From the NCBI RefSeq assembly GCF_052425735.1, contig NC_135760.1, forward strand, positions 4,774,001-4,838,000: 64,000 nucleotides of DNA, in the 5' to 3' direction. The notes beneath the pieces were generated by a model. The model had not been told where the DNA came from and searched no databases. It saw only the letters and a program-made list of their open reading frames with translations. The position numbers were made by a program, and so were the translations under genes. Shown here in pieces: positions 1 through 64,000 of the stretch. How positions within the stretch are numbered: position 1 is the stretch's first letter; each line of letters begins with the position of its first letter. The stretch comes from Oculina patagonica. Lineage: Eukaryota.

Positions 1-324
1 GTGTCAGACTTACGTGAACACTGTATCAAAGTGTTCAGTAGGGATGGGAATTTTCTGTACAAATTTGGAAAGAATGGGAAGGGAGTCGGAGAGTTCAATT
101 ACCCTGGTTACTTGTCAGTTAACAAAGCAGGACACCTGATGGTCTGTGATACAGACAATCACAGGGTTCAGGTCTTCGAACTGAACGGAAAGTTTGTAAC
201 AAAGTTTGGAACAAAAGGGAGCGGGATAGGAGAGTTTAATAAGCCATGCTCTACAGCAGTTCTTAGTGATGGTAGGATAGTTGTGTCTGACTGGCATAAT
301 CATCGAATTCAGATACTTCAGTAG
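1..324 (+). CDS. TRIM-NHL E3 ligase paralog 1, 3' end only (NHL blades 4-6; start lies upstream of the window)
   Basis: Open frame to TAG at 322-324; co-linear with the C-termini of the 24297 and 51013 copies. AATAAA at 883-888 is conserved in the paralog flanks. Confidence 0.9.
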   Translation: MSDLREHCIKVFSRDGNFLYKFGKNGKGVGEFNYPGYLSVNKAGHLMVCDTDNHRVQVFELNGKFVTKFGTKGSGIGEFNKPCSTAVLSDGRIVVSDWHNHRIQILQ

Positions 325-3299
325 CTTTGATATCCACTCACCTGTGAAGTAATTTCTTGAGTGATTCACATTTGCCATCAGTTAAATCTAGTGAAACGAT
401 TTTGAACTACTTGTCAACTTTTAGCCGTTTTGGGGGACTATGTCTATCTATAGTAAGTTACAAATTTGGAATGAAAGCTCCCAACCAAAAGTTTTTTTGA
501 AGTGTCAGAGATTTAAGACAGAAAACTGAGTTCTTTTGAATTGAAATGCCAGGGGGTTCTAAACAATGTTTTACCTAATTGTAGTAGATTAATTACTTGT
601 CACCGAGGTAATCTGTTTTAACTCGTAAGCCGAACAGTTAAAATTAAGTAAATTTTTGTAAATTTTTGTAAATTTAGTTTAGACCACTTGTCACAGAAAT
701 ATCTATGCATTGTAACCTATGTTTTGATCTGTATTTTTCAAAACAAAGTTTCAAAACATAAATTTGTTGCAAATAAGTAGTTTTATATGTTGTGACGTTA
801 ATTAATAATCTGCGTGACATTTACTGATCATGAGTTAAGAAAACCTGATCAATTGTAAGATTCGAAAAGGAAATGAAATGTGAATAAAATGTAGTTTTTT
901 CCAGAGGTTTAACTGGTGACCATGTTATTCTTGGGAGCAGTTTGTAAGGGGAGCTATATGATTACTTTTTAATTGGTTTGAAACAGAATCTTATCACCTA
1001 GCTAGATGATAAGCTCTTGATTTAAAACGATATCATGTACTGGATTGTACTGGATATAACCTGAGTATACTAGAGTCAATGAGCTATTTTAAAACAAGTT
1101 TGGATACTATTTTTCTAAAATTCATTCAATTTCCTAAAATCGAAATGGAAATTATTGGATGATTGAATTTCAGAAATTTGTTTGTAAATTTCAATATTTA
1201 TTGCTGCAGTGTGCTCTAAACAAAAAGTGCGTGACGCAGTTGATCGAGTGGAAACGTTGCCAGTAAACTTATTTTCTCACCACTTTAACCTTGAGAGAGA
1301 TTAAAAACTTAAATGACCAAGGTGTGTTAATTTTTGGCCAGTTTCGGGGTACCTCCGGATCTAATTCGTTATTCGTCAGTTGATACCAAAATACTGGAGA
1401 ATCCTGTACCAGTTGTTGTCACCTAGAGTAATAAGAGTATTATTCAAAATTTGCCTTAACTGAAATTAAGAATAAGGCCAAAAAAATTAACTATTACCTT
1501 ACTAGCTTACTAGGTTATCACAATTTTTTAGAATGAGATAAGAAGGCTAATTTACTTACCATGAAATTGCAAATCATGAGTAACATGTCCTTCTCTTCGC
1601 TTCATCTCGTTGGTCGAGGCCAGCGCGTGTCACGTTAGCCGATCGATAGGCATTGTGGGATGTTTATCGGTTTCATCGCCACTAACTAAGTTACACTGGC
1701 TGCCAATTTTATGCAGAATTGAGTTCAAAATACTTTTTATTAGTTTTTGGATTCTTTCAGTTTTGAGACTGGGACAAAATTATCCATTATCAGTGGTGGA
1801 TCTAGGGGAGGAGTCCGGGGGGTCCGCGCACCCATTTAATTTTATAGGGCAAACTGCAGTCCGAAAGGGTCGAGAAAAATTAATTTCGAGAGTGCCTCAC
1901 CCCTTATTTCAGGATGTGGATGACCCTTCCCACTTTAATCAATGGTCTCGATTTTACTTTTTGGTGGCGTGACAGTGAAAACCGGCAATACCAAAACACG
2001 AAACTTGCTTCTCAAACCTTTATTATTAATCACAACTTAAAGGTATCAGTGTTATCAATACAGAAATTAAAAGCACCCTGCCCGCTTGTACTAAATAAAG
2101 TTATTTTAAAGTTCTATTAATTCCACTTTGTCTTCGTGCAGCATAACAGCTAATCACTGGACCAGAATGTACCCCATGGCTTTGATATGTTTGTCTCCAT
2201 TATCCGGACCAATGGCAGCCTCGTTGCCACACGTGTTGGAGTCGTCCGTCGACCCTCCGGTCCCAAACCCGATCCTGGAGTCACAGCTATTGCAATCATT
2301 TTCTTGATTTCCAAGTATGTCAATTCTTGCTTTAGCGCACTGTTTACACCCACCGATAGAATTGAACCCTTCTTGGTTGCAGTTGGTTTGCAGTGAAGCC
2401 TCTGCGCCAATCAGAGTCTTCCATTTGTCTCGACCCAGGAACGTATCGCGATGCTCTCCGTCAGCAATCAGCGAGTACAGGGAGTTCGCGCTCTCTTCGA
2501 TAACGATAAAATTCCGTTGTCCGTTGACCTCCATACCAAGGCAGATCTTGGTGAAGGGCGTGTTCCAGTAAGTCGGTACCTTGACTTCGTTTGTTTCAAG
2601 TGCCATTGCCCCTACTGGGAGTCCGTAGTAGTTTTTGTCGCTCCAGTAGGACGAATCGTAATGAAACGTGTTCTGCGTAAAAGAGAAAAAACAAGAAATT
2701 AACCAGACTGAAAAGGATATATTGCATAGATCTTTGTCGAGATACCTTTCTTTTTCCTTTTTTTATTTACACCTTTTGCCGACCGGCCTTTCACTCACTC
2801 GCGCTGTTCTTTTAAACAACGCGCAAACCCTCACCTTTATCAATTAAGAAAACGTTCACTCCTCGTTTTCCTGGCAGCCGACGTGGCAGCCTCGCTCCTG
2901 ACCTCTCTCCAGTTTTTTCCTCGCGCACCAAATCCAACATGGCTTTCTTTTCCCTAGTCTCCCTTTGCGGCTTCACCGCTCGAGTGTCGCGGCTTCGCAG
3001 CTTGCTTGCTCGCTGGCCAGCACAGATTCCATCTTTAGAAAGAAACTCATCTTTACCGTGCTTACGGCATTTTGAAGCTGTTTTGAAACTAGATATTGCG
3101 CCTTCTCTGTTTAAGATTAACAATTAGAGCATTTCGCTAACAAATAACCGAATGTTTTACTGAAACAAAAAAAAATCCTACACAGAACCCGTAAAGGATC
3201 CATTAGGCATCCTGCCTTCATTTAAGAATCCTGTATCCCCCACCCCCTTCAATTACACCCCACGGTTTATTTAGGTAAAAACAACAGGACTGCAATCTT

Positions 3300-4093
3300 T
3301 TTGATGAAAAAACTACTTTCAACTGGGAACAAGCGTACCTCATGGCACCAAGTTATACCAAAAGCACCAAACTGATCGAGTTCCAGTTTAAACTTTTGCA
3401 TAGGCGCATACCAACAAACAAGTTCCTATTTAAAATAGAAAGAAAAGAAAACGAAAATTGCACTTTTTGTCACAGTGCCTCAGAATCATTAATCTACCAT
3501 TTTTGGTCGTGTAGCGTTACATCCTCCTTTTGGAAAAGAGTGACTGACTGGCTTCAGGAAAACCTCTCGATAACAGGCGAATTCACTTTATTGAATACAA
3601 CAGCATTGGGCCTGAGGCCAGAACCTCATTCAAAATATGCGCTTCAATTGAACTATGCTTTGTTGCTAGCGCGGTATCACATATGGAAAGTCAAATTAGA
3701 GGAAACCACACCAAATTTCGCACCTTTTCTACGTCTTGTAAAATCAAGATATGTATTAGAGACAAAAGCGGGTGACACAAAAAAATGGATGCCTTTTGCA
3801 GAATGTTTATAAAGAGTTTATCTCCTGTCCCCCTGACTAAAGGACTGTTATCTTTTTAGCAAAGCTGTAAACGCTCTTGTATTCATATATAGAAACTATC
3901 TCCCCTCCCCCCTGACTGACTAACTCATTGTAATTTTTCTAATGTATTTAAACCATTGTAATTAGGATTACCTACCTTTTATTTTTGCTGTATTTTACGT
4001 GCTTTAGTGTTTGTACTGTATACGTTATTTGTTTCTTTTTTGTGTTTGCAAGTGATCAATAAAAAAAATAAAAAAAAAAATAAAATAAAAAAA
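3300..4093 (+). mobile_element. L1/Tx1-type LINE, 3' fragment (C-terminal zinc knuckle, 3'UTR, A-rich tail) in a USOMP5-like intron
   Basis: ORF 3342-3812 contains FQFKLLHRRIPTN...CTFCHSASESLIYHFWSC; A-rich tail at 4058-4093. Confidence 0.85.
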
Positions 4094-4351
4094 GAGCAAC
4101 AGATAAATGACCGTTTAGATGCAATTCGTGTTTATTTGGATAAAAGTCAGATCGCGAGACCTTTTTACTCTTTAGAGCACACTGCATCTTCCTTTGAGCC
4201 ATCTCTCCCACCTCCGCCCCTTCTTGAGCCATCCGCTTTACATCTGCCCCCTCAAAAGTGCCTACGGGATAGAAAGGGCTCTCATGGGCTATTTAACATG
4301 GTACCCCGGCATGGAACTAGCCGGACGACCAGCCCTCCTCATCTTTACATA

Positions 4352-4865
4352 CAGTCGAAGCTCTCGTAAGCGGACACCCTCGGGACGCGAAAAAAGTGTC
4401 CGCAACTGGAGCTGGCCGCTTACGAGAGTGGTTCTCGTAAGCGGCCACTTGAGGTGTAGGGGATAAATGGCCGCTTACGGGAGCTTGCCCAACTAACATA
4501 ATGCTAATATGTATGTAAGTGGTGTTTCGAAATGTAACTGGACGTGGATGACGACAAAACAAACACTGTAATATGGTACTGTAAAATCATTGTGACGAAC
4601 GGTGATGTGCGGTTGATTGATAAAAACAAGATACAAAGGTTGTTAATAGGATTTTCTTTGGGGTGTCCGTTTACGGGAGGCTTAAAAACAAAGAAAAAGT
4701 CTAAGTCGTAATCTCTGAAAGTGTCCGCGGCCGCCTACGGGAATGTCCGCTTACGAGAATGTAAAAATACAGAGTTTGTATGGGAGCTAAAATGGGGTTT
4801 CAAAAAATGCGGCCGTAAATAGAGCTGTCCGCTTACGAGAGTGTCCGTTAAGAGAGCTTCGACTG
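4352..4865. mobile_element. Tc1/mariner (pogo-like) MITE
   Basis: Terminal inverted repeat (TIR) CAGTCGAAGCTCTC...GAGAGCTTCGACTG with TA on both sides; absent from the paralogous intron (~29290). Confidence 0.85.
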
Positions 4866-5094
4866 TACTCACTAACTTTGTCCTCTCTTCCCGTAGTTCA
4901 TCAAAGAAGATGAAAACAACAACATCAACAAAAACAGAAAAGCAACATAAAAAAACTGGAGAGGAGGGGACAGAGGGAAAAGAGAGACCGTTCGTAGTCT
5001 ATTATGTATGTTACCTGGAAGCCGTTTATCTTCATCACCAGTGTCCATCCTCCACCACCGCATTCACCAAGGCCGGCGTCACTCATGTGACAAT

Positions 5095-5323
5095 AGGGAC
5101 CTTCAGATCGGAGTACGAGTACGAGATTGAGTACGAGTACGAATTTTCAAGCTGGTGTTTACGCATTTGATTATCACATTTCACACTAATCTTGTACCAA
5201 TATTCTTTATTTCAACTGGTCGGAAACAGGGAGGAGTGAGGGCTCTACGAACCTAACCGGATTGAAATTCGGAAGTCGTACTTGTAGTCGAATTTGTACT
5301 CGTAGTCAAATCTGAAGGTCGCT
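5095..5323. mobile_element. MITE with 3-bp AAT TSD (PIF/Harbinger-related type) inserted in a coding exon
   Basis: Imperfect ~30-bp TIR AGGGACCTTCAGAT/ATCTGAAGGTCGCT; AAT at 5092-5094 and 5324-5326. Removing it restores the frame (KISVNCHM). Confidence 0.9.
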
Positions 5324-6324
5324 AATTTACAGAGATTTTTCCAACATCCTGCATCGTCAGATTGTAAGGTTGATCCTTTTGAGCCCTGAAAGATCGTCAA
5401 TAAAAACCGATTTGACTTGGCTACAAAAAATTCTATACGTTAAAATTATTTCATACGAAAGGTGAATGAACTGAAGATGCGAAGCCTAGTCGCTAGGAAC
5501 TTTTCTTTATCGTATTTTATGACAGCGCAGAAGTGAAGTAACCGCTTATGATAAAGTCCAAACTCCCTCAGTTCCCTGAGCCAAGAACGCTAAGGCGTCC
5601 AAGACTCTAGTTAATTTGGAGGCAAGTCCATGTGGCAATTAAAAATGACAAAGATAGAAAAAAGGCAAGAACATAATGTGTGCGTTGAACACATTTTTAG
5701 AACTCCTCACACTATTTCAATTAAGAAAAGGTAAGAACAGTCTGCGGCAGACTTGAAGATCAAACTATTTAACAACCTGCTAAGAAAGAACCCTGAGACT
5801 TCAACAGTTGGGTAAAATTTTAACGTTCTGACTGATGAATTTAAAAATGAGCCCCTACAAATAACACACTTATGCAATTATGGCACACTTATAAACCGTT
5901 ATCTTAAATAAACTTTTTTTTAGGGGGAGGGGGAGAGGGGAGGTAGGGAACAGGTCGATCAGACTAACGCCCTTCTTTTGTTAATCATAGAACCATTAAT
6001 CGAAAAAACGGGAAGTTGGTTCAAAACAAGTAAAAGTCAGCAAAACTTACTTAGACTTGTCATAAATCTCTTTGTATGTAGCTGCTGGTTCTGGTGAACC
6101 TCCCTCACAGGGGGAGAGCTAGACCACTAAATGGACTCTGGTACCTGTCAGGGCTTTCAAAACGGCCGACCTGCATTGCCAGAGTGTTCTAAGCAAATGA
6201 TTTGAACAATCTTTGGGCTGACTTGTTTTGTTCGGCGGCCACGCATCACCAGTTTAAAAAAGATGGTTAATTACTGGCCCATGCCCCTACCGCTGGGGAT
6301 TTGTTTTGTATCGTTTGGTTTTGT

Positions 6325-6749
6325 CCCGGGGGGGGGGGGTACTCCCATACATGGGCTATATAAGTATGTGCCGCGGGACAGGGTATGGTTTTTGAGGTTC
6401 TTACTCCTTATTCCTTATATGGGGTATCATTTCTGCTCCTTTTAGCATTGTGTTCCCACCTAAATTCTATCAGCTAAAACAAACGCCCAGCTAAACGAAA
6501 AAAACTGAACTATCCGTTCAAATATTAGTAAAGCGATTTAATAAAGATTTGTGTTTTGCCGGGCCCAGTTAGCCGTTATTTGGGTCGTCACGGAACGCTT
6601 CTCCTCCCCTTGAAAAGGGTGTCATTTTTCGGTTTTGGGCCTTATAGCTTAAGAAGGGTATCAATTTTTTGCTTTCTTTATCCGGCTTTAAGTACCTTTG
6701 CGGCACCCCCCGTCCGAAATTTATGGGAGTATTCCCCATCCCCGGGGGG
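6325..6749. mobile_element. MITE with CCCGGG(G)nTACTCCC-type ends
   Basis: Inverted ends CCCGGGGGGGGGGGGTACTCCCATA / TATGGGAGTATTCCCCATCCCCGGG; absent from the paralogous site at ~50540. Confidence 0.75.
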
Positions 6750-7046
6750 CGTTTGTTTCGTTTTCGGTCAAGTTTAACCGGTTAAACTGGGATCGTGCGA
6801 ACCTGCACGGTGTAATCATTTGTGAATATTTCAGAGAACATAAGCAGCATCTTTTTGCTTTCAAATGCGTTTATGCTACGTTTTTAACCTCTCTTCTAAT
6901 TCTACTTGGTTTATGTTTTATATTATGAAAAAGGCAAGGACTGAAACTGTGTGATTATCCATGCGAAAGGAGGACTGGTTATGCAGATTATGTTTCAGTG
7001 TTTTGCATTCTTTGAAGCTGCAAAGGTCACGCTATTTTGATCACAA

Positions 7047-7089
7047 TTCTTAGAAATCTTGGCAGTCAGTCTGTAAACAATTCTTAGAA
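7047..7089. promoter_or_regulatory. Tandem GAS/STAT-type sites (TTCTTAGAA x2) with a forkhead-like GTAAACA between them
   Basis: TTCTTAGAA at 7047-7055 and 7081-7089; the same pair lies upstream of the other two TRIM 5' regions. Confidence 0.5.
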
Positions 7090-7281
7090 GTCAGACAGTG
7101 CCTCTCGTCAAACCTCTTGTGAAGCCTTTTTAGAACGAAGTCCAAGCGCTGAGATCGTGCAGAAACTCGCAATAAACACAATCATCTTTCAGAAAGGAGT
7201 CGGCGATGAACAAGAAGAAGTGGATCGGACTGTGACCTTCAAGTCCTTCGTCAATTCATTTTCGTACAAATTAAAACATTA

Positions 7282-8475
7282 ATGGAGAAAGCAGAAACTG
7301 ATAGAATCGGCTCTTTCAAAACATTCATTAGCAAAACTGAAGCTCAGCAATCAAGTGCCGAAGGAAAAGGAATCAGTGAGGCGACTGTTGGACTTGAAAC
7401 ACAGTTGGTGTTGATAACAAGAAATGCTAAAGGAGAACAATGTTACGAAGAACGTGACTCGGTAACAGTGGACATTAGAAATCAAGGCCATGACTGTACA
7501 ACGAAAGTGCGAGTCCAAGATAACAGGGATGGCACCTACAAGATCAGCTATTTTGGCAAAGAAACCGGAAAATGCGACGTATCAGTGAAGGTAAATGATG
7601 AACACATCCGCGGCAGCCCTTTTGATGTTCAAGTGAAACCCAGACAGTACAGACTCGTGTTATCTTTTGGACAATACGGTTCGTCTGCTGGAATGCTTTT
7701 TGGTCCTCGGGGGCTGGCAGTGAATGAACGCGACGAAATTGCAGTGACTGGGATTGGTAACGACAGTGTTCAGGTATTCAATAGCGATGGGACTCACTTG
7801 AGGTCGTTTGGTAGAAAAGGTGGCAGACAGGACGAACTTAACTGGCCTTTCGGCATAGCTTTTTATACAAATAGTAATATTATAGTAGCGGACACTGGTA
7901 GACACCAAATCAAAGTTTTTAGTGAGCAGGGTGAGTACCTGAACCAGTTTGGTGAACAAGGAAGTCTTGATCACCAGTTTAAGTATCCTTTTGGTTTATC
8001 CGTTGACAGCGATGGCAATATTATTGTTGCTGATTCAGATAACAAATTGATCAAGATATTTTCTCCTAGCGGCCAGTTTTTGCGTAAAATTGGTGGTAAA
8101 GGCTCTTTCACCCATCCCATTCACTGTGTCGAATATGACAAGTATCTTATAGTGTCAGACAGGGATGAACACTGTATCAAAGTGTTCAGTAGGGATGGGA
8201 ATTTTCTGTACAAATTTGGAAAGAAGGGAGAGCGAGATGGAGAGTTCAAATTCCCTTGTTACTTGTCAGTTAACGAAGCAGGACACCTGATGGTCTGTGA
8301 TTCATGCAATCACAGGGTTCAGGTTTTCGAACTGAGTGGAAAGCTTGTAACAAAGTTTGGAACAGAAGGTAGCGCGTTAGGAGAGTTTAATAATCCATGC
8401 TCTACAGCTGTTCTTAGTGATGGTAGGATAGCTGTGTCTGACACGTTTAATGATCGAATTCAGATATTTCAGTAA
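7282..8475 (+). CDS. TRIM-NHL paralog 2, N-terminally deleted (filamin domain plus 6 NHL repeats; possibly a pseudogene)
   Basis: 397-aa open frame. Upstream, promoter sequence joins directly at 7120-7122 to a frameshifted coiled-coil remnant, so ~1 kb including the start codon, RING and B-boxes is missing. Confidence 0.7.
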   Translation: MEKAETDRIGSFKTFISKTEAQQSSAEGKGISEATVGLETQLVLITRNAKGEQCYEERDSVTVDIRNQGHDCTTKVRVQDNRDGTYKISYFGKETGKCDVSVKVNDEHIRGSPFDVQVKPRQYRLVLSFGQYGSSAGMLFGPRGLAVNERDEIAVTGIGNDSVQVFNSDGTHLRSFGRKGGRQDELNWPFGIAFYTNSNIIVADTGRHQIKVFSEQGEYLNQFGEQGSLDHQFKYPFGLSVDSDGNIIVADSDNKLIKIFSPSGQFLRKIGGKGSFTHPIHCVEYDKYLIVSDRDEHCIKVFSRDGNFLYKFGKKGERDGEFKFPCYLSVNEAGHLMVCDSCNHRVQVFELSGKLVTKFGTEGSALGEFNNPCSTAVLSDGRIAVSDTFNDRIQIFQ

Positions 8476-8640
8476 CTATGATATCCACGAATCAATTTTG
8501 ATACATATTTGCAATCAGTTAAATTGAGAGAAAGGCTATTTTAACTGTCTTGTCAACAAATTTCAGCTATTTTGAAAGTATTTTGCAGGGAGTTAAGACT
8601 AAAATCTGAGAAAACCAGGAATTCATCTTGAAGTTTGTTT

Positions 8641-11600
8641 GAGTTTCTAAAGTCCAATGGCAGGTCGATAGTACTTAAGGTGAGAATAAAAGACAAAAAT
8701 TATTTATTAGTAAATATTTATGGTCCAAATAAAGATGCAGAGGCAGTTCGATTTTATCAAAATCTGTCGGCAACATTGCGAGAAATGGATCCTGACAGTG
8801 ATGACAATATCATCATAGGCGGAGATTTCAACTGTCCTTTAAATCCAACCTTGACAAAAAGGGTGGAATACTAATTCCACGCCAACATGTGATCAATTCA
8901 ATAGAAAACATTCAAAATGAATTTAGTCTTCATGATATATGGCGTATTAAAAATCCGAACACTTGTAGCTTCACATGGAGCAAAAGCCACCCTTTCATCT
9001 TTTGCAGACTTGACTACTGGTTAATTTCAGACAAGTTAAATGACTTAGTTACGCATGTTGATATTCAAGCTTCAATAAAAACTGACCACTCGTCCATAAT
9101 ATTAGAACTAGAAGATATTAAAGATAGTCAACGGGGACCAGGTTTCTGGAAACTAAACACTTCCCTGCTGGCCAGGCCTGATTATGTTGAGATGATAAGT
9201 AAAGAATTACCCAATTGGCTGGAAGATGCAAGAGATCTGTCAGACAAGCGAGCAAAATGGGACTGGCTTAAATTTAAAATCAAAACTAGCTCAATTATTT
9301 ATTCAAAGCAGCTGTCAAAAGACCGACAGAGAAGGGAGGAAGAACTTAACGCCAGGCATCAAGACATGCTCTATAGTAAACAAAAAGTAAATCTAAACGG
9401 TGATGAAGCTAATTTCTTCTTTCAAAATCCAAATTTAAAAAGACTCTCCGAGGAATTAAGCACAAATTGTGAGGGAGAAATAACTCTTCAGGAATGCGAA
9501 AATATATTAGGCTCTTTTCACACGGGCAAAACGCCCGGGAACGATGGAATTCCAATAGAATTTTATAAAGCATTCTGGCCTTTATTAGGCAAATTTATGG
9601 TTGATTCATTTAATGAGGCTTTTTACAAAAAGGAAATGTCTCACTCACAGAAACAAGCTGTTATAACACTTATTGAAAAGAAAGGAAAAGAAAGAAACTA
9701 TCTTGAAAACTGGAGACCAATATCATTGACTAATGTAGACGCGAAAATTGCATCTAAAGTAATTGCAGCTAGAGTTATTAAAGTCCTACCGGAAATAATT
9801 CACTGCAATCAGACCGGTTATGTAAAGGGTAGGTTCATTGGCGAAGCAGCAAGATCAATTATAGATATTATGGACTATACAAAGAAGCAAAATATACCAG
9901 GTATATTACTTTTTATTGACTTCGAAAAGGCATTTGATAGCATCGATTGGGAATTCATGTTAAAGTGCTTAGACGTGTTTGGTTTTGGACCTAGTTTTAA
10001 AGGATGGGTAGAAACATTTTATAAAAATATATCTAGCTGTGTGATAAATAATGGGATGTGCACATCTTACTTCGATGTACAGAGAGGAGTCAGGCAGGGC
10101 GACCCATTATCACCATATCTCTTTATTATTGCAGCTGAAATTTTAGCTACTGCGATTCGAAGTAAAACAGAAATTCAAGGACTTAAAATAGGGCGAGAGG
10201 AATTTAAATTCGTACAATATGCTGACGACCTCACTGTGTTTGTGCCAAATCTTGATTGTGTACAACGTACCTTTCATTTGCTAGATCAATTTGAAACTTG
10301 TTCGGGTTTAAAGGTCAATTATACCAAAACTGAAGCTATGTGGATTGGCTCTTGTCGAAATAATACAGCGGCACCTTTGGGACTTAAATGGGTAAATACA
10401 GTGAAGGCACTTGGAATAGTTTTTACATATAACGAAACTGAACAATTGCAGAAAAACTTTTGTGAAAAACTAAAAGATATTAAGTTGCACACGCGGTTAT
10501 GGCGTTGCAGAGGTCTCTCACTGCTTGGAAAAGTTACAATAATTAAATCCTTTTTGCTTTCGAAGATGATATATGTATTCTCAGTTCTCCCAACTCCACA
10601 AGATTTCATCAAGCAGATTAACACTATTATATATAACTTCCTATGGAATGGGCCTGACAAAATAGCACGAGCAGCAACAATTAATGACATTAAATTTGGA
10701 GGGCTAAGGCTGATAGATGTAGAAACTTCAATTAAATCTTTAAGATTAGCCTGGCTTGGTAGAATATTTTCTGAGGGCTCTGCACCATGGAAAGCTTATA
10801 TTAATCAAATGCTTGACAGTTACGGTGGCACTTTTCTATTGAGATGTAATTATGATGTTAACGATTACAACTTTCAATGCCCTTTCTATAGCGAATTTCT
10901 CCAATGGTGGGCTGACTTTAGAAATGATTCCTCTACCAGGCCTCTTATATCTGAGCGTATAATCTGGAACAATAAGCTAATTAAAATAGATGGTAAGAGT
11001 ATATATTTTGACAATTACGTTAAAGCTGGAATCATTCTAACCAATCAGATGCAATTTAATAAGGATAACGTGGAATCATATAATAGGGCAAAAAATGAAG
11101 GGTTGAGACACACAAATTTTTTAACGTGGTCAGGGATTCGATGTGCAATTCCCACCCACTTAAAAGCCTTAGATGGAAATGAAAGTGAAATAGATTCACT
11201 AACATTTCATTTTAATGAAAAGCTACTTGACCCAGTAACTTGTAAAAGTAAGCAATTCTATGAACTGCTACTCTCAAAAAGGGCAACGGTATCGAGGGGT
11301 TTTAATAAACTTAAAGAAGATTTTGGATTAGATGATACAACTGTGTCAAAGGCTTTTCTTAATTTAAAGTCTATTTTATCGGAAACCTTTGTTAGAAGTT
11401 TTCAATTTAAACTGTTAAATGATATTACATTCACTAATACGCGGTTAGCAAAAATCGGTTATGTTCCAAATGATACTTGTACATTTTGTAAAAACGAGTC
11501 AGAAACAGTATATCATTTATTCTACCACTGCTCTTTGACACATCTCTTTTGGGAACACTTTAAAAATTCCTGGTTTGTATTAACAGGCCAACAGGAGGAA

Positions 11601-12007
11601 CTTACGCTAAAAGACGTGTTCATTGGGAAAATAGAAAAAAGTGATTTGTTGAATTATTTTTTAATTCTAGCAAAATTGCATATCTGGTTGAGTCGAAAAC
11701 ATTCAAAAATCCCAAATATTGATGTATTTAAAGAACTAGTTGATCTAAAATATAGAACTGAGAAGTATATAGCAGTAAAAAATAATATGCAGAGCAAATT
11801 TCAGACTAGATGGCATTTATATATAAGTAATAATAGCTAAATCATAAGTTCTTACGAGTAAGATAATGGTAAATAGATAAGATAGTACATAGGTATATTG
11901 TAACGGTGTCATTGGTATATATGCACCGCAAATTTATATATGAGACTGTAAAATTGTAAAATTTCTGTTTGCAAAACAATGGCAATAAATATGTGGAAAA
12001 AAAAAAA
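8641..12007 (+). mobile_element. 5'-truncated L1/Tx1-clade LINE (APE endonuclease C-terminal part, RT, zinc knuckle)
   Basis: Motifs GGDFN, RLDY, TDH, PGNDG, QGDPLSP, YADD and CTFC..ETVYHLFYHC; AATAAA at 11984 plus poly(A); 16-bp TSD ATCTTGAAGTTTGTTT at 8625-8640 and 12008-12023; 1-nt frameshift at ~8853. Confidence 0.95.
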
Positions 12008-13164
12008 ATCTTGAAGTTTGTTTAGTCGGGCATTGTACTTTTGAATTTGCCTTAGTAAATAATGAAACATATTCTGCTTCTTATTAAGTTAACTTGTCTT
12101 TCTAGATCTCTAAAATTTATTCGATTTCCTAAAATCGAAATGGAAATTCTTGGATGATTGATTTTCAGAAATTTGGTTTTAATATATTTCGCTGCAGTGT
12201 GCTCTGTCTGCTCTAAACAAAAGGTACCTGACACATTTAATAGAGTGGAAACGTTTCCTAATCTTATTTCCCCCACCACCACCCCCCTGCCGAGGCAAAC
12301 TCGTGTTAATTTGTGGCCTGCTAAGACTTTGGGGTTTATCGGGATCTAATTCTTTATTCGACGGCCGACCAAACGCGGAAATTCCCGTTTCATTTGTTGT
12401 GCGCCACCATCTAGTGCTGCCACAACCCTTCCCCTCCTCGCCCCCTGGGTCGGCCGAAATAATAAACTAAAGGACAAAACGCGTTATATAAACGGTCGAA
12501 TGAAAACAAAACTAGTTTTAGTTGTCATGGGGTTCTCGGGAACGTCACGCCATCTACCGTCGGGGAGGAGCGCGTTACAGGCCTAAAGAACGTTTGCCTC
12601 AGGTGTCTTTTCCTGTTTGTTGGATGATTTTGGAAAATCTTTCCTGTTTCAGCGTCTTCCTGTAGTTGATCCGGCATCCCGATTGTGAAGCACATGTTAC
12701 AAGATCTTTAGGTATCTACCTAAGCATAACAGTTTCAAGTTCCCAACGACCTAATGGGCGGAGGGGGGTGGGGGGGGGGGGTGGGAGGTGTCCATCAACT
12801 CTTCCCCTACCGGCTCTTCTACATTTGCAGGGTGTGAGCTGCTATGCTTTCAAAAGCATTTTTCCCTCAAAACAATTCGCTAACTCGGTTCTCCCACATC
12901 CCCTTCATTTCTGTTTTGTTCAAGTCTCAGAGGATTGAGTATTTTACTCAGATTAATGTGATACAATGGTCGCGATACAATAGAAAGCAGCGAAAGGACC
13001 TGTGTTTAAAACTAGCACTTTCAGTAAGAACGATCACTGTTTAATGGGATATCCCAGGACATTAATCTGTCAAATCTCGCAGGTAACAACTGCGATGAAA
13101 ACGATGTGAAACGCACTAAAGTTTTGGAAGAGGAAAATACTCATATAGTCTAGTTATAAATAAC

Positions 13165-13402
13165 ATAATAAATGACTTTATTTAAAGAAGAAGCCACTTC
13201 AGCTTTAGCTGGTTTACGTGCAGATCCTTTATCCAGATCCAGTTGGAATGAGGGAGGAAAACCGGAGAACCCGGAGAAAAACCCTGGGGCAGGGACAAGA
13301 ACCAACAACAAACACAACCCACCTATGGCTCCTGACCGGAATCGAACCTGGGCCACATTGACAGGAGGCGAGCGCATTCGCAACTGCTCCATCCCTGCTC
13401 CC
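13165..13402 (-). mobile_element. tRNA-derived SINE (V-domain-like core), degenerate
   Basis: Reverse complement resembles the SINE at 15240 (B box GGTTCGATTCC; TTTTCTCCGGGTTCTCCGGTTTTCCTCC). Confidence 0.75.
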
Positions 13403-13616
13403 CTATTCAATACAGCAAATTCGAGAAAAGCTGTCGGAAAAAAGCACAAAAGTGAATAGAATTCACATTCAACCCTTCTTGGTTGCAGTTGATTTGCAGC
13501 GAAGTCTTTGCGCCAATCAGAGTCTTCCATTTGTCTCGACCCAAGGACGTCGGCAATCAGCGAGTAAAGGGAGCAGGTGCTTTCTTCGATGACGAGGAAA
13601 TTCCGTTGTCCGTTTA

Positions 13617-14385
13617 GTTTAGTTTATTTGTCGCACACATTTATATTTACAAGAAAAAAAAATAATAGCAAGAAAAAAAAAAGAAACAAAAAACCGTGCT
13701 ACAAGAGACAGAAACAGGGGAAAGCTGCAATTGAAGGGGTATCAAATGGTCTTTGCGAGCATTTGCGAGCATGCGAGCACAGCGTTTTTCTTTGCGAGCA
13801 CGAGCATTGACAAAAATTAGCCTTGTGAGCAACGAGCACTTTTCAAAAACCTACCTCCACTAAAAACCGAGCATGCGAGCACTTGTAAAAATAAGCGAGC
13901 ACGAGCAAACGAGCATCCACTAAAATTTTGCGTGCATTGCGAGCACTGCGACATTTTGAGGGACCATTCATGACCCCTTAACTGAGACAAGAATCAAAAA
14001 GGGATAAAAATATTTCACACTTCGAGAAGACAGAAAGAAAGAAAAAAACGTTGAAAAAATTATTGCGGCTGATATAGACTAAGCTAATCTATTATCTTAT
14101 TAATAAGATTCTTAAATTGAGTAATTGTAGAGCTATTCTTAATTACACTGGGTAGATTGCAATTTTTAACAGTCCTAGGAAAGTATGAGTTCGAAAAGTA
14201 TGACTGGTGGTGGGAAGTACTGAGAAGGAAATTACCTGGATCAAAGTTACGTCTAGAATAAGAGCAAGTTGCAGGTTGTAAGAAATTACCAAAATTTGCA
14301 TTAACTAATCCAATCTTATATTTAAGTAAAAGAGTCAAGTCATGTATTTCTCTACGATATTCTAACGGTACGCAATTCCAGCTGT
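13617..14385 (-). mobile_element. CR1/L2-type LINE 3' fragment
   Basis: PLEYRREIHDLTLLLKYKIG...FSNSYFPRTVK..LP (RT C-terminus) with a (TAAAC)n-like tail; paralogous fragment at ~55878-57200. Confidence 0.65.
13734..13979. mobile_element. MITE nested in the LINE fragment
   Basis: TIR AAGGGGTATCAAATGGTC / GACCATTCATGACCCCTT; internal GCGAGCA repeats; absent from the paralog. Confidence 0.7.
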
Positions 14386-14699
14386 ATTAAGCTATAATAT
14401 AATAATATAATAATAAAGACTTTATTTAACGAGGGTAACATAATTTACTGGTGGCCCAGTAGTTTGCAATATGGCCCTCCCTCCCTCTTGGGGGATAGTT
14501 GACCTCCATACCAAGGCAGTTTTTGGTAAAGGGCGTGTTCCAGTATGTTGGTACCCTGACTTCATCCATATCGAGTACCGTTGCCCCTGCCTCGTGTGCG
14601 TATTCTGTGTTGTTGCTTTAGTAGAGCGAATTGTAATGAAACGTTTCCTGCGTAGAAAAGAAACAAAGACGTATTAGCCAGACTGGCTGATCTTTGTTG

Positions 14700-16143
14700 A
14701 GACACGATGTGGCATTGTTGAAGCTGAACAGGGCCCTGAGATACAACAACAGAGAGTGAGACCAGTCTGTCTTTCAGAATCAAACTTTCCTTCTCTTAAA
14801 ATCTGTTTCGTTACTGGATGGGGAACAAACGAGAAGAGTAAACAAAATCAATCCCAGGTATGTACCTCTGCTAATTCAGGAAAGAAAACAATGTGTTAGT
14901 TGTATTACAGGCCCATACACACTGTAATGAGCGCCAAGGACAGCGGAGAAGAAAAAGCCGAGGCAATTATTTGTATGTACGTGTATGTACTTAGGCGCTT
15001 AAATTCTCGGTTTGTTATTAACTATCAGCAGTTTGTGTTTTGTACCACAAATCCCTTGTATTCAGTTTTCATTTCTTACTGCAATGCCTTCAGAAAGCAG
15101 GAGCAGATCTCTTTACATAGCTTGTCGCATGATTTGTAACTGAATTCGCTGGAGCTGAGCTCTCATTCAGGTTATCCTGGGCCGGAGAAGGGTCGGAGAA
15201 CGCTCTCCGCGACTTGCATAGCTCACCGATAGGGGGATAGGGGGAGCAGGGATGGCACAGTGGCGAGAGCGCTCGCCTCCCACCAATGTGGCCCGGGTTC
15301 GATTCCCGGACTCGGCGTCATATGTGGGTTGAGTTTGTTGTTGGTTCTCGTCCTTGCTCCGAGGGTTTTTCTCCGGGTTCTCCGGTTTCCTCCCTCCACA
15401 AAAACCAACACTTCCAAATTCCAATTCGATCGGGAATACACGGCCCCACAAGCTTATAGCTTTAAACCTCACCGTGTCTTAATAAAGGTAATTTATTTAT
15501 TTATTTATTTACCGATTCCCTCTCTCCTTTCTCAATGCAACATGTTTCCATTTCTTTCCTAGCATAAGAATAAATACAATTAAACTTTACTTAATCATGG
15601 TTAAAACGCCAGTTAAAAAATGATACAAAATGATACGTGTTTGCCGTGTGGGTGCCCGTTGAGGCGTTGAAGTCATTGATTCCCTTTCAAAACCTTGCTA
15701 TGGTTAATGGCTTACGTAGATTAGACGGCAGTTCATTCCAAACAACAGCCCCAGATTAAACAAAACTGTGATTAAGATAATTAGTTCTTGGTTTAGGTAC
15801 TTGAAAAATGTTCTCAGAGTTGCGGATACTGTAGAAGCTTGCGAGCGGAGAACAGATCTTGCATGTATGGGGGCGTTAAATTGCATATTCGTGTAGGGCA
15901 TGACGCGATACTAATGTTTATATTGTTGAACTCCCCCTTGTCCCACGTGGCACTTGTCAGAGAAGCAATAACTTGAGGGGTTTTGGATTCTGCGTCACAA
16001 CTAGCAAACCGCATGCGCTGTGCAGGTTACGCTCAAAGCGGAATTGACGCATGTCCAGTTGATAGTGGAGGACCTCTGGTATGTGAGAGGAACAGCAAGT
16101 GGCATCTAATGGGCGTGGCCAGCTGGGGTGCTGGGTGTGCTCT
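14700..16143 (+). pseudogene. Trypsin-like protease pseudogene (remnants of the second and third catalytic exons)
   Basis: [10 protein letters not shown]...VCL...CFVTGWG at 14700-14857 and [23 protein letters not shown]...WGAGCA at 15930-16143; frameshifted and truncated. Confidence 0.85.
15240..15510 (+). mobile_element. tRNA-derived SINE with V-domain-like core and (ATTT)n tail
   Basis: A box TGGCACAGTGG, B box GGTTCGATTCC; near-identical copy at 57927-58190. Confidence 0.85.
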
Positions 16144-18089
16144 GTAGTAACTTTAGGCTAGTAGTACTATTGAAGTTTTGATTGGGTTAACTGCAAATCA
16201 AAGCTGTCGAGAATTCTTAAATCAAACAAAGCTTTGATAGTTCAGTTTCAGTATGAGTCAGTTTTGGACAACTTAGTAGTGAAATCAATTATGTATTATT
16301 ACAAAGGAGCTATTATTGTCCAATAGATAGGATCTTGCCCGTTTCGTTTTTGCCATAAATGTTTACTACATTGTACAATTAATAAAACTTGTTTAATAAC
16401 TTTGCTACTGAACCGACAATACAACAAGCTATTTTCCACTTTGTCCCCAGGGTCCTCTCGGTAGTAGGCGAAATGTTGGGGAAGACCCAGGGACTTGGCT
16501 TGACTACCCCTTCATAAAAATGGGCTCAAAACATAAAAGTTATACTCCCGAAATTCCTTCAAAGATGCCAAGGCACATCAACTTACTTTTTGATTTTCCG
16601 TTCGAGCTACGTGAACGGTAATCCGTTGCCTGAATATTGCGAATTTGAAAATGTTTACTATGTGTTTTATACAACAACATGCATGGCCGCGACCTTGGAA
16701 ATAGATCGATTCTGTATGTTTTAAGTGGCTTAGGGTTTTGGTACTGCTTGCAGCTGTTGTATTTCAAAATTTTCCCAGTTGCTATATTTATACTATGGCA
16801 CCTCTAAAGGGTTCACGAAAACAGGAATTAGTTGTCAAGAAATAAAATTGACATTTAATTGACCTCTTTTGTTTGCTAGGACGTGGATTAATTATGGCCT
16901 GTTAAGTTTTTGGAATTTGCAACTTAAGAGTTTGAAACCCACATGAGAGCTACACCTCAAAAAATTATTTCTATAGGTTTAAAGGGCTTACTAAATTTTA
17001 TATGATGGGATTTAGTAGATTTAGTAGACATAAATTTTTTAATTTCTAGAAGATACAGGGCCGCTGTGAGCAAGAGACCGTTTGACCTTTCTCGCAGCTT
17101 AAAAGCTAGCTCCCGCGTATCGTATGTCCTTTATCGCAGGTCACGCTATAATATAACGTAATCTTTGTTGAGTCAACATAGGGAAATCTAAAAAAATATA
17201 TATAAAATAAAATATTACTGTTGTACAATTGAGTAACTGTGATCTACGAAGAAAATGTATTTTTAACTTTGCATCCTTGAGCTGTGAATTCATAACTACT
17301 GTATTTATTTGAATTCCATCAGATCTTAAGTATTCTTTTTATACAATCACTAACATTGCTTGTTAGGTTTAAAAAAATGTAAGCTGCAGTTGGATAACAG
17401 TCTTAAAAGACCCCTTGTGAAACGTCATCGCTTCTGCATGTATTACATGCCGTTTATTTTTTAATGGCAGTTTCTTCTCAATATATGGCGAGGTTGTAGT
17501 CCAAAGCTTGACCGTGGCGCAAAAATTAGTAATTTTCTGCTCTTGGATTCTACCCAGTCTTTGCGCGCTCTTTCATTGGCGAGCACAAAGCACGAGAAAG
17601 ATCCTGGGAGGGAGTGATTCCCCGCCTCTGTTCGCAAAATTTTGACGTCACGGGCTACACGAAAATGACGTTGGTTACTAGGCCGCAACCTTGAAAAAGA
17701 AGCCATTTTTTTTTTTTTCCGAGGGGGGTGGGAGGTCTTTCTAGGGACTGGAATCTTAACTCCTGACCCTTGGCATTCTCAACTTAATTTAATAAATTTG
17801 TATTTAGCACATACTATACTGGGCACACCAAATCTGTCTGCATGTATAAATACTGTTTTACATTTAATTTTTGTAGCGTTGTGTTGTACACACAAAAGTG
17901 ATTGACCAGGGTTTTTTTTTTTTGGAAACACTTAAAATACTGTGGGAGAATTTGATAGTGTTTATATAAATGTTGCGTTTCAATTTTTACCCTTCGTAAA
18001 ATCTGGTATTTCCTTTTTTTTTACCATTTTTTTTTTATTTTTTACCATTTACCAGAACAAAGGAAAACACCAAATGATGCCAAAGGTAA

Positions 18090-18264
18090 AATAGACCATA
18101 TTCGTATTCTCGGTATTGAACTGGAACTAGCTTGCAATGGAGGCTAATGCGGGAATCATTTCAAATGCAAATGACATGAAGCTCTTTTTAATGATATTTC
18201 CTCGCATCAGCCCCCATTGTAAGCTAGTTCCAGTCTTATACCGAGAATACGAATATGGTCTATT
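18090..18264. mobile_element. Palindromic MITE
   Basis: AATAGACCATATTCGTATTCTCGGTAT / ATACCGAGAATACGAATATGGTCTATT; copy at 60776-60952. Confidence 0.8.
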
Positions 18265-18652
18265 GAACCATAACATTAAACCTCGCCTATGACTCACTCG
18301 GATTTAAATAAACTTTAAAAACTCGTTAAAAATTTTCGTGTTAAAATCCGAACCGTGACGATGGTTTTTTGGCTATGTGATCCTAATTAGCATATATTTT
18401 TACGATTTTATTCCGTTTTTTTTTTCTCGTAGTTTTAGTTTTGAATAAGAAGTACTATCTGATAAATGAGGGCGAGTGTTTCATCACATCTCCAAACACC
18501 TAAACAAATACTCCGCTGGGCATCGTATTTTCAATTCTCTAGCTTCTCGGTGTTGTGAAATTCGATGCAGAGTTTCATTTCATACTTCCAACAGGTTATT
18601 TAGAAAACGACGGCCATTGTTTATTTCTAAAATATGTTATTTTCACACTCAG

Positions 18653-23388: not shown

Positions 23389-24108
23389 TAGGACGTGGAT
23401 TTTGGCTTTCGCGCATTGGCCAAGAATTTGAAATTTGCATCTCATAGATTCTACGCAAATAATTCAGGACGTAACAAATCCATCGAAATCGAGCATCGGA
23501 AAGCTAATCGATTTATCGATACTACTCGAAAGTGATCGATGCTTGTCGATTGATAAGTTAATTTATACGCCAATCAGAATTCAGGAAAGACGTTGTATAT
23601 TCGACGGTATATTTTCAACTCAACCTTCCCATCGTGCGCTGCGATCTTATCATCTCGACGAAATTTATATATAAAAAAAGTTACACAACACTTTCTCGTG
23701 GTATACTATGGAATACAAGTGACTCGTAGGATATTCCACAGTATACCACTCGAAAGCGTTGCATAACTAGTATTTAATCGATCGAAATCGATAATAACAA
23801 AATTCCGACTTAAATGGTTAACATAACATCGATTAAAAGAAATGAAACACTATAACTCAAGCAGCTCAAGCAACTTTAAAACTTACCTTTAAAGCTGAGA
23901 TAACTACTCTTCTCTCTAGTCGTCTATTTTCCTACTAAATTTTTCAATATTTTTCCTCCAGGGCCTCTACAGACAAGACTATGTTGAAAATGTTTAGCTG
24001 GTTGACCACGCATCACCTGTTTCGATATGATTTACTGACGCTGATTATGCAGATTATGTGTTTTGCAATCTTTTCTAAGCTGCAAAGGTCACGCTATTTT
24101 GGTCACAA

Positions 24109-48305: not shown

Positions 48306-49249
48306 AAATCAAATTCTTGCTCGGCCGTTCGTAAAAGTCACTCTTAATATTTTTGCTCTAAAATGTGGCGTTTATTCAAGGACGGCGTTTAATCGAATAA
48401 ATACGGTATTGTATATATTGTTAACCGGACAGGTTTTAAAAGAAGCTAAACTTCCCCTTGTCCCACGTGGCACTTGTCAGAGAAGCAATGACTTGAGGGA
48501 TTTAGGATTCAGCGTCACAAACCGCATGCGCTGTGCGGGTGACGGTAAAGGCGGGATTGACGATGTCCAGTTGATAGTGGAGGACCGCTGGTCTGTGAGA
48601 GAAACAGCAAGTGGCATCTGATGGGCGTGGCAAGCTGGGATGCAAGGTGTGGGCAAAAGGGTCAGCTCAAGAAATGGATAAAAAGAATAATGCTGCACCT
48701 TTTGTAATAGGATTTCTACTGACTGTTTAGTTCGTTTTGCTAAGTTCTCGGTAGGAATTTAATTTTGTTTACGTTGTAATTTTAAATTTTCGGACCGTTT
48801 TATCTTTTATAATAGCACTGGTCCTGAAGAAGACTAGTAGTAATATTGAAATATTGGCCAATTAAAAGTGTCCTTCGCCGTAGTGCCTACAATTTAATTG
48901 CGCTGTCATGAATTTATAGCTGTCATGAATTTGTAAAACAAACAATCCAGTTTTAGCCAACAATATAGTGAAGAAATTAATCATTCATTTTTTTTGCAAA
49001 GGATCAGTTTCCTATTTAGCTACGCAAACGGTGATCCGTTGCCTAAATATTGCAAATTTGAAGATTTTTACTACGTGTTTTACACAACAACAGGCATGGC
49101 GGCGATCTTGGTATTTTAGAACCATCCTGGTGCTCTGTATGTTTTTAAGGGTTTAGGAATTGAAAATTCTGTTTTGGTACCGCTCGCGACTGTTCTATTT
49201 CAAAATTTCCAAGTTGCTACATTTATATTATGGTACCTCTACAGAGTTT

Positions 49250-61927: not shown

Positions 61928-63715
61928 AAAGTTTTGATTGTGGTAAAAAGCCACCCCGTTCTAGGATATATGGGGGCACCAACACACGTCCAGGGGCGTG
62001 GCCTTGGCAAGTGTCATTAAAACATCGATACAAGGCACATCTGTGTGGAGGGTCAGTGATTGGTCCAAAGTGGATCTTAACAGCGGCTCACTGCTTTGAT
62101 GGCTTTAATCCAAACGATTTCACCATTATTGCAGGTAATCCTAATTAACTTTTCACTAAAAAAGGGTCGCTACAAAGAAACTGGTAGCACTGTTATCGAG
62201 GGTTACAGCTATGTTATTTAAACAATTCATAAGTCCCGGCTAAACGATTAAATATTTTCATTTTACTTCGTGCTGCAACGACATCGTTTAACGTTCACTG
62301 GGCTGGCTTACTTCCAATCAAATAATGGTCAAACGCGAAAAGCGAAAAGCTAGTCTATAAGTTTATAAAAGAGCAAGTTATTAAAGAGCAAACACTTTTC
62401 ACCCAGAATGTAATTGTTTAGTTTTGGCTTCATTAGGTCACTAGGAAACTCATTCCAAATAAAAGCGAACGTTTTTCAAGTTAGCCGGACAACTTTTCCA
62501 AGCTGTATAAAACAGACACAGGCCCATTTCTTAAGCAACAAATACAAGTTTGATTGTATTTTAATTTCATTTTTTAATTGCTTTATTTATTCAAACCAGG
62601 GGAGCATCATCTCTTGAGAGCAGATGGCTTCGAGCAAGAGGTTGCCATCGAAAAGCTCTTCAAACATCCTCGGTACAACATGACCTGTAGGTACAACAAC
62701 GATGTGGCATTGTTGAAGCTGAACAGAACCCTGAAGTTCAACAACAGAGTGGGACCAGTCTGTCTTCCTGACTCGGAGTTTTCATCTGGTTCCATCTGTC
62801 ACATCACTGGGTGGGGAACAAATGGCAACAGCGGTAAAAGGCGTCCAAAGGTACATAAGATTAATAATTGGGCTAACTTAGGTATGCCAAAAAGCGCTAA
62901 AAGGATCATTCTTAGAGAACGTTTTAGCATAGAAATGACTTTCGACTTTCTCATTTAGCTTATTACGAAGGGAATTTCCTAGCGGTTTGTCCTACCCTTT
63001 TGGAGACTAAATGCAAACTTTCGCTACTGTGTTAAAGATCATAATAACTTTTACTATATTAGTCCTTGGACAACGGTCACCCTTTTCCTTACCCCGATGA
63101 TTTAAGACAACAATTCACACTTATTCCTACAAACCTACAATAAAACAACTCACCATGCGTGTAAGTTTTGTTACAATTGTGGATGCTTTCTCAATACCTT
63201 TTAAATTGGAAATAAGGATTATAGCAATATAATTCATCTTAGAATTAAGAAAATCATGAACTTGATAATGCTGCAATTCATTTTCGACAGTTACTTGTCT
63301 GGAAGAGAATTTAGGGGCATCTTGTTTCGGTTGGGGAAAAATACAGGGACTCGCAGTCACTAAAAAGTTGCGAAAACTAATCTTCATGAAACTATTTCGT
63401 CTTATTTATCAGACCTTGAAGCAAGCTAAACTTCCTCTTGTGTCACGTGACACTTGCAAGAGAAGCTACAAGGACTACCGGTCTTCTGGCTACTGCGTCA
63501 CAAAATGCATGCGCTGTGCAGGGTACGCTAGAGGTGGTGTCGACGCCTGTAGAGGTGATAGTGGAGGACCGCTCGTCTGTCAGCGGAACAGGAAGTGGTA
63601 TGTCATGGGCGTGGTCAGCTGGGGAGCTGGGTGCGGACAAAGGGGACGATATGGAGTCTATGCTGATGTGTTGAAGCTCAAGCAATGGATACAAGAAACG
63701 ATACAAGATTCATGA
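61928..63715 (+). CDS. Trypsin-like S1A serine protease B; exons 61928-62134, 62600-62850, 63413-63715; upstream exon(s) not identified
   Basis: Near-identical to protease A with intact triad and splice sites; lacks the accessory exon. Confidence 0.8.
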
Positions 63716-64000
63716 TGAAGAATCAAAATTGATTGTGGATAAATGATTTATTCGCCTTCCTTGTTATTTTCATTACAGTACTAGTTATTAAACCCAACCT
63801 AAATTGTAAAATTGTTTCTAAAATGTGGTCACGACCATCTCAATATTAGTTGTCCTCGTTTTTGTTCTCTGTATACTTCACAGGATTCCAATTTAATTTT
63901 ATGTACCTCACTTCGGTGTTTTTTTATGTCTACCTGCGATTTTGTTTTTTCGTTCTCCGCCTTTTAGCTTCGGCGCCATTTGCGTATACAGTAGAACCCC

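Follow-up and report, generated by a model that had tools for sequence, protein, structure and literature searches.

We analysed a 64 kb window of the Oculina patagonica genome (G000:C3:4774001-4838000; the window means this whole stretch of DNA) that carries repeated copies of genes from three unrelated families, namely TRIM-NHL genes, genes resembling USOMP5 and genes for trypsin-like proteases. Its gene content was compiled from an open reading frame (ORF) listing, Pfam, tblastn and self-blastn, and the gene order listed in an earlier note on this DNA was reproduced in every element by tblastn, the ORF listing and self-blastn. The cluster to which the window belongs arose through nested segmental duplications, both tandem and inverted, and the majority of its copies are broken.

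The window opens on the plus strand with the last 107 codons of a TRIM-NHL gene, encoding NHL blades (1-324; 83% to the intact TRIM by tblastn); the full copy, at C3:4772051-4774321, starts upstream of the window and has a single in-frame TAA. It is followed on the minus strand by a USOMP5-like pseudogene (psiUSOMP5, 2157-6100), delimited by exon-by-exon blastn against the intact copy. What remains of a TRIM 5' region, including both TTCTTAGAA sites (6749-7098, plus; self-blastn and motif search), then precedes a truncated TRIM, deltaTRIM, comprising Filamin and NHL, residues 307-757 only (7121-8475, plus; ORF listing, Pfam and tblastn). Next come the 983-amino-acid (aa) reverse-transcriptase ORF of a non-LTR retrotransposon of the long interspersed nuclear element (LINE) type (8889-11840, plus), a psiUSOMP5 made up of exon 4 pieces only (13464-14680, minus; tblastn and blastn), and a trypsin-like pseudogene with a frameshifted exon 2 piece and an exon 3 piece that reads VDSGGP (14706-16147, plus). 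The LINE ORF, whose YADD-type reverse-transcriptase motifs were read by eye, sits between the truncated TRIM and the matching USOMP5 remnant. Protease A (18653-21161, plus; Pfam and spliced translation) is followed by a TRIM promoter block conserved among paralogues and other corals (24041-24278, plus) and an intact single-exon TRIM-NHL gene of 757 aa (24279-26552, plus; ORF listing and Pfam). The intact USOMP5-like gene, of 309 aa, lies convergently at 28433-32678 (minus; gene model and spliced contigs). A fourth, unrelated gene is represented by a Kelch-repeat exon (38781-39800, minus; Pfam). Beyond it are trypsin-like pseudogene remnants (plus; tblastn), with an exon 1 piece at 40844-41065 and a frameshifted exon 3 at 48421-48692, and a second intact TRIM-NHL gene (50757-53268, plus), whose ORF spans 50995-53268 and whose promoter block starts at 50757. 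The right-hand end holds another psiUSOMP5 (55692-57303, minus; tblastn and blastn), a trypsin-like pseudogene (57465-58821, plus; tblastn) and protease B (61928-63715, plus; tblastn and gene model). Open copies number two of four for TRIM, one of four for USOMP5 and two of five for the protease.

A convergent USOMP5-like copy after each TRIM, as the earlier note had claimed, was found 1.8-5 kb downstream of the stop in all four window TRIMs. Self-blastn aligned 1-2838 with 26229-29109 (83-87% identity), 7120-21422 with 51912-63981 (70-96%, patchy) and 24041-27329 with 50757-54094 (92% over the TRIM, 69% in the downstream flank). These blocks take in non-coding DNA, both introns and spacers, as well as pseudogenes and the Kelch gene, and because they are large and alignable the repetition reflects descent and not chance. 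The window reads as two copies of a super-unit, in which TRIM, USOMP5 and a Kelch gene with a protease pseudogene are followed by TRIM, psiUSOMP5, a protease pseudogene and a protease; in this reading the first copy is short of the Kelch stretch and of codons 1-306 of its second TRIM and has an added LINE.

Mapping of the families over 264 kb around the window delimited a cluster of about 233 kb (C3:4661307-4894424) with at least eight TRIM, nine USOMP5 and 13 trypsin-like copies or fragments. It contains inverted units, and all seven TRIM 3' ends in the map face a USOMP5 copy. The histories of neighbouring genes run in pairs, T1-T6 (98.5%) with U1-U7 (99.4%) and T2-T4 (92%) with U3-U5 (90%). 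A 7.7-kb block is 97.3% identical to a duplicate 81 kb away, the match beginning just past the TRIM stop, whereas the TRIM coding sequences of the same duplicate pair (24279-26552 vs G000:C3:4879174-4881707) are just 92% identical. Similarly, exons 1-2 of the protease show 87% identity by self-blastn between flanks at 95-96%. Such mosaic identity suggests that the repeated genes have undergone recombination or gene conversion, and the TRIM genes look like hot spots of one or the other process, judging by the alignments. Only two copies of the Kelch gene exist in the genome, and the duplicated block contains both, the second 81 kb downstream; unrelated genes were thus also carried along. The claim that the three families have been copied together as one physical unit and have evolved by birth and death is therefore well borne out by the duplicated blocks and the many pseudogenes.

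Each of the three subfamilies is nearly or fully confined to this locus. TRIM copies share at least 86% identity inside the cluster and 77% with the next relative outside; trypsin-like copies share at least 61% inside and 44% with the next relative outside; and USOMP5 copies share 86-100% inside and at most 73% elsewhere, except for a lone 93% copy at C3:4455609 with no detectable TRIM flank. The 576 TRIM candidates of this genome lie in arrays on C3, C14 and C11, and in a DNA search of the genome the similarity to more than 30 sister-array TRIMs stopped at the stop codon and never reached into the TRIM-USOMP5 spacer. Canonical USOMP5 genes form single-family arrays here (mainly on C13) and in another coral. 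Among the top-scoring members of those candidates that were scored, no two of the families were found within about 45 kb of each other outside the cluster.

In other species, the view of neighbouring genes was limited to 10 kb or to short scaffolds. In the TRIM tree, the cluster TRIMs group with TRIMs of ENA assembly ERZ25067872 and with one Tara scaffold, and the nearest array of O. patagonica falls outside this group. Six ERZ25067872 loci with seven TRIMs, at a synonymous divergence (dS) of 0.31-0.37, match the window in the promoter and over roughly 1 kb of 3' flanking DNA, and neither USOMP5 nor trypsin was present within 10 kb of these seven TRIMs. Two 9-kb scaffolds with trypsin orthologues (L025 and L026) end about 200 bp before the expected TRIM start and are silent on linkage. 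The copies cluster by species in the tree (dS within the cluster 0.11-0.26), and amplification or homogenisation thus took place independently in each lineage.

The intact TRIM combines a RING domain (PF13445, 33.1 bits, cut-off 25.2; PF00097, 29.1 bits, cut-off 21; residues 22-64), a B-box (PF00643, 37.6 bits; residues 162-198) and a helical, heptad-rich stretch (200-340) from which we infer a coiled coil. Its C-terminal part contains Filamin (PF00630, 73.3 bits) and NHL (PF01436, 139.3 bits in five scored stretches; PF17170, 60.4 bits), and the ATG at 24297 is the likely initiator of the gene at 24279-26552. With RING, B-box, Filamin and NHL all passing Pfam thresholds, the cluster TRIM resembles class VII TRIM-NHL proteins (TRIM2, TRIM3, TRIM71/LIN-41), and public annotation labels the paralogues TRIM71-like or TRIM45-like. 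Unlike that class, the coral TRIMs are intronless, occur at the many candidate loci counted above and have a compact conserved promoter with two STAT-type sites. In the truncated TRIM, a 397-aa Filamin-NHL ORF is open (7282-8475) and both of these sites are kept, while RING, B-box, the greater part of the coiled coil and the CCAAT/GATAA stretch of the promoter are lacking; it may be either dead or a decoy without ligase function. Over the whole TRIM, the ratio of non-synonymous to synonymous divergence (omega) is 0.40-0.56, and it rises from 0.28-0.39 in the N-terminal part to 0.51-0.83 in the NHL part. Copy T2, which contains a stop, aligned wrongly and was left out of this calculation. Transcript evidence here and below consists of contigs from three public runs of three studies, whose RNA nature is a guess. 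Such contigs span the intact TRIM and its 3' flank to about 27248 with many mismatches, so that the coverage may come partly from paralogues, and the TRIM at 24279-26552 is likely transcribed.

About 230 bp of TRIM promoter are kept among paralogues and species, with two TTCTTAGAA sites (TTCNNNGAA, similar to the gamma-activated site (GAS) bound by STAT) 34 bp apart, followed by a CCAAT box and a GATAA motif. The GAS-like sites lie at 24109 and 24143 upstream of the first intact TRIM and at 50828 and 50860 upstream of the second, and the block also precedes TRIMs on other-coral scaffolds L021-L024, L032 and L033. Exact TTCTTAGAA matches occur six times in the window vs 1.3 expected, all six in TRIM promoters; the same exact-match search of the window found none near USOMP5 or protease genes. 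As a compact element kept between corals, this promoter offers a handle on the regulation of the TRIM-NHL subfamily.

Four minus-strand exons (32678-32459, 30191-30137, 29597-29459 and 28948-28433) make up the intact USOMP5-like gene. Their uninterrupted reading frame encodes 309 aa, in which a signal peptide precedes a heptad coiled coil, a Gly/Ser linker and the globular head. Contigs of all three runs skip exactly two of its GT-AG introns and continue into exon 1, and they match the window copy exactly across the splice joints; the spacer at 27249-28436 is nearly free of them. Since these contigs are joined at the intron ends, the gene is transcribed and spliced. A frameshift in the A-run of the window copy was considered and rejected, because the spliced contigs and the family alignment put this copy in frame. 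One A is missing from the exon 3 A-run of a near-identical paralogue 81 kb downstream (G000:C3:4884640-4884840). The public model ACROYT_G008838 (P0001) restores the frame through an upstream acceptor that is unused in transcripts; this annotation is probably wrong, or else the gene is broken. Exon 4 is 99.2% identical between the copies of the 81-kb duplicate pair, and its omega of 0.16-0.28 denotes purifying and not diversifying selection. The first psiUSOMP5 retains an open exon 4 (2157-2705), an exon 3 in two parts (4995-5095 and 5329-5403) with a 233-bp insertion between them, and exon 2 (6032-6100), together with a retroelement fragment in an intron; as exon 1, with the signal peptide, is gone and exon 3 is split, it is a true pseudogene.

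The globular head of this protein was difficult to place with standard profiles. Pfam gave no match at E 0.01 on the exon 4 ORFs of the cluster, and in six full-length coral homologues (four annotated in this genome, none from the cluster) PF00147 was either absent or scored 16.6 bits vs a cut-off of 22. A PDB search with a shallow USOMP5 profile likewise returned nothing. Among 1.84 billion representatives we found 2156 USOMP5 relatives, and a profile from 58 diverse members matched intelectins/X-lectins at E 2e-7 to 1e-5 and the fibrinogen domains of angiopoietin-like proteins, tenascin and ficolin at E 0.006-0.2, all matches being confined to the first 55-88 residues of the head. Distant family representatives pass Fibrinogen_C with 51-108 bits over profile positions 2-71 of 221 only. 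USOMP5-type heads were also seen at the end of multidomain proteins 900-1900 aa long, which further contain disintegrin, laminin-G-like and MopE-type metal-binding repeats, and the N-terminal part of the head in these proteins scores as Fibrinogen_C or as fibrillar-collagen C-propeptide (COLFI).

An AlphaFold model of P0001, built on a shallow alignment, was discarded (predicted local distance difference test, pLDDT, 51); the exon 3 frame of P0001 is unsupported by transcripts. The structural comparison therefore refers to a model with pLDDT 97.2 of P0013, a canonical family member of this genome and not a cluster copy. This model superimposes on Xenopus XEEL, human intelectin-1 (ITLN1) and lamprey LSVL (5zc0, 4wmq, 7e1e, 4wmo and 6usc) with Z 14.2-14.5 and a root-mean-square deviation of 3.4-3.6 Å over 200-206 of 223 residues (Foldseek E 4.6e-4 to 1.6e-3 against intelectin-type structures), and on ficolins, angiopoietins and fibrinogen gamma with Z 8.2-8.8 over 150-180 residues. 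The earlier description of a secreted fibrinogen-related-type protein thus holds for the superfamily, the signal peptide and the coiled coil, but the X-type lectin/intelectin branch (Z 14.5 vs 8-9) is the closer label for the modelled head. Like intelectins, the cluster USOMP5 is secreted and probably oligomeric; unlike them, its head is only 13-16% identical and about 55 residues shorter, and oligomerisation would proceed via the N-terminal coiled coil. The best AlphaFold/Swiss-Prot structural match of the P0013 model is USOMP5 of Acropora millepora (Swiss-Prot B8VIU6), to which P0013 is 69% identical with the same architecture, whereas the cluster copies form a subfamily of their own with a slightly longer first strand region. 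Short-FReD 'intelectins' of placozoans resemble the USOMP5 head (PMC6321704). We found no paper stating an X-lectin identity for coral USOMP5. A family with no Pfam domain and hundreds of copies per coral genome can now be placed in the intelectin/X-lectin branch, and the modelled fold makes glycan binding an activity worth testing in a protein of skeletal matrix and eggs.

Protease A is encoded by exons 18653-19048, 19535-19741, 20193-20443 and 20859-21161, open across every junction, and PF00089 matches all three catalytic exons. Its spliced translation contains TAAHC, NNDVALL and GDSGGP; Asp189 is recognised six residues ahead of Ser195, and R|IYGG marks the activation site. The predicted product is an intact S1 trypsin-type zymogen with a His57/Asp102/Ser195 triad, and the zymogen protease proposed earlier is upheld by this triad, Asp189 and the activation site. 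The first of the exons identified (18653-19048, phase 1-1) encodes a 131-aa domain with six cysteines, for which there was no Pfam match and no usable Atlas match; the private protease of this cluster hence bears a domain without family assignment. This exon is conserved in another coral (L025:1990-2307) and absent from protease B, whose own exons (61928-62134, 62600-62850 and 63413-63715) retain their splice motifs. In the other coral two cysteines of the domain have been lost together, as expected of a disulfide pair. A 5' signal-peptide exon was not found for protease A, and CUB, EGF and CCP modules were seen neither in the protease exons identified nor in the ORFs read at 16100-19460, on which Pfam was not run. 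The catalytic part scores 105 bits against factor XI and plasma kallikrein and 82 bits against MASP-1.

We consider passive co-amplification of three neighbours in one duplicon, followed by birth and death, to be the most probable explanation of the cluster, with a probability of roughly two in three. The three families recur together because they lie in the same duplicated DNA block. The ancestral unit may have spanned about 25 kb and comprised a trypsin-like protease, a TRIM-NHL E3 ligase on the same strand and a convergent USOMP5-like gene. It would have been multiplied by repeated tandem and inverted segmental duplication in a lineage-restricted cluster, and patchy exchange among the copies, deletions and the insertion of transposons would then have left most copies as pseudogenes. 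There is no sign of selection maintaining a working trio, and we infer that each gene acts on its own: the TRIM presumably as a cytosolic ligase whose NHL face changes rapidly and whose promoter is of the STAT type, the lectin-like protein as a putative secreted oligomer, and the protease as a putative secreted zymogen.

Some observations weigh against passive co-amplification. In Tara sample ERZ28654993, trypsin exon 3 (83% aa identity) lies 2.6 kb upstream of a full TRIM on scaffold L032, and on scaffold L034 a complete four-exon USOMP5 (71-87% aa) is convergent with a TRIM-NHL 3' fragment. According to the earlier note, its proposal would be weakened if the families were linked nowhere but here, in this one species; in O. 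patagonica the linkage is indeed confined to the present locus, but both adjacencies recur in a second coral, and the unit is consequently older than the species. Each subfamily is private to the cluster, as would also be expected of a co-adapted set, and each large half of the window retains at least one open copy per family. The three runs with contigs over USOMP5 also yielded contigs over the TRIM, the runs being RNA by guess and the TRIM coverage possibly paralogous. As to the two adjacencies, the dS of the ERZ28654993 scaffolds to the window is 0.40-0.54, and intergenic DNA is still alignable at this divergence, so that retained synteny is the neutral expectation.

Of the other explanations, that of the earlier note fares best, though we regard it as unlikely: a functional immune cassette, in which an X-lectin oligomer for microbial glycans, a linked dedicated zymogen and a TRIM-NHL intracellular arm would be kept together and duplicated as a set by selection. 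Intelectins bind microbial glycans, and the resemblance of the head to them (Z 14.5) fits such a role, as do a signal peptide and coiled coil suggestive of a secreted oligomer and an intact protease that has an activation site as well as a further conserved domain. Conservation of both adjacencies, the private subfamilies, the two conserved GAS-like sites in the TRIM promoter and an NHL part that changes faster than the N-terminal half would also agree with it. However, the GAS-like pair is not common to USOMP5 or the protease, exon 4 of USOMP5 is under purifying selection and the majority of copies are dead. TRIM co-orthologues expand without the partners in another coral, the Kelch gene and transposons were co-duplicated, and a cytosolic ligase has no obvious compartment in common with two secreted proteins. 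Nothing was found that shows joint action of the three families.

The analogy with ficolins and their proteases, on which this proposal drew, does not hold in its known form. As in the ficolin-MASP pathway, there is a secreted fibrinogen-superfamily head on an oligomerising stalk; the neighbouring gene specifies a trypsin-type zymogen that has Asp189 and is activated at an Arg. Unlike in that pathway, the 309-aa cluster lectin has no Gly-X-Y repeats and protease A has a six-Cys domain, no CUB, EGF or CCP being found in the exons identified, and the catalytic domain is nearer to factor XI/kallikrein than to MASP-1. Without a collagen stalk, and with none of these modules in the protease exons identified, the known mode of lectin-protease docking is absent. 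A co-adapted module older than the species is more doubtful still than the immune cassette. In such a module the coiled-coil X-lectin might recruit and activate the neighbouring zymogen via the six-Cys domain, with a STAT-driven, fast-evolving TRIM-NHL as the linked intracellular arm, and whole modules would come and go by duplication and loss as the pathogens change. If true, this would be a counterpart of the ficolin-MASP step free of collagen and CUB, and if the linkage were functional it would represent a novel type of lectin-protease partnership in an animal lineage that branched early.

A role in reproduction or the extracellular matrix, with turnover arising from gamete or matrix biology, appears similarly improbable. 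USOMP5-type proteins occur in egg/yolk and in the skeletal matrix. X-lectins, whose fold the USOMP5 head adopts in the model, include the frog egg cortical-granule lectin, and many TRIM-NHL proteins regulate germline mRNAs; egg and germline roles are known for Xenopus XL35 and TRIM71/LIN-41. In favour of this role, an 'egg protein' transcript of Euphyllia ancora, up in mature ovaries, was annotated as USOMP5 (PMC7579821), and USOMP5 isoforms shift in skeletal regeneration (PMC12019164). However, nothing links the cluster subfamily to gonads or skeleton, and the linkage poses the same problem as in the immune reading. An assembly artefact through uncollapsed haplotypes or mis-joined contigs, for which the 97.3% identity of the block pair 81 kb apart and the 99.2% identity of its USOMP5 exon 4 copies might speak, was considered and rejected as very improbable, since the window copies differ by 4-30%, far above allelic divergence, their identity is a mosaic with TRIMs at 92% beside flanks at 97%, they differ in transposon insertions and deletions, and contigs of independent runs match the window copy exactly across splice joints.

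Birth-and-death clusters formed by segmental duplication include the vertebrate TRIM clusters near the major histocompatibility complex and the NLR and lectin clusters of invertebrates. The coral locus resembles them in its tandem and inverted duplicons, many pseudogenes and exchange between copies, and in the faster change of NHL, the putative ligand-binding domain (omega up to 0.83). It differs from them in that the unit consists of three unrelated families in fixed order and orientation, and the other TRIM-NHL and USOMP5 arrays examined here and in other corals are single-family, unlike the cluster. If the linkage is passive, the locus is a clean example of segmental duplication making unrelated genes resemble a designed cassette, and a caution against inferring function from repeated gene order within one duplicon family.

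Outside the cluster, at least 363 USOMP5 candidates were counted genome-wide, with hundreds of last exons in single-family arrays at G000:C13:16-32 Mb, many of them having a single in-frame TAG. Going by the modelled fold, the arrays on C13 appear to be a very large, mostly unannotated X-lectin-like family. Within the window, self-comparison further revealed an internal tandem repeat in the last psiUSOMP5 region (56048-56951), with a period of about 260 bp and 98-99% identity.

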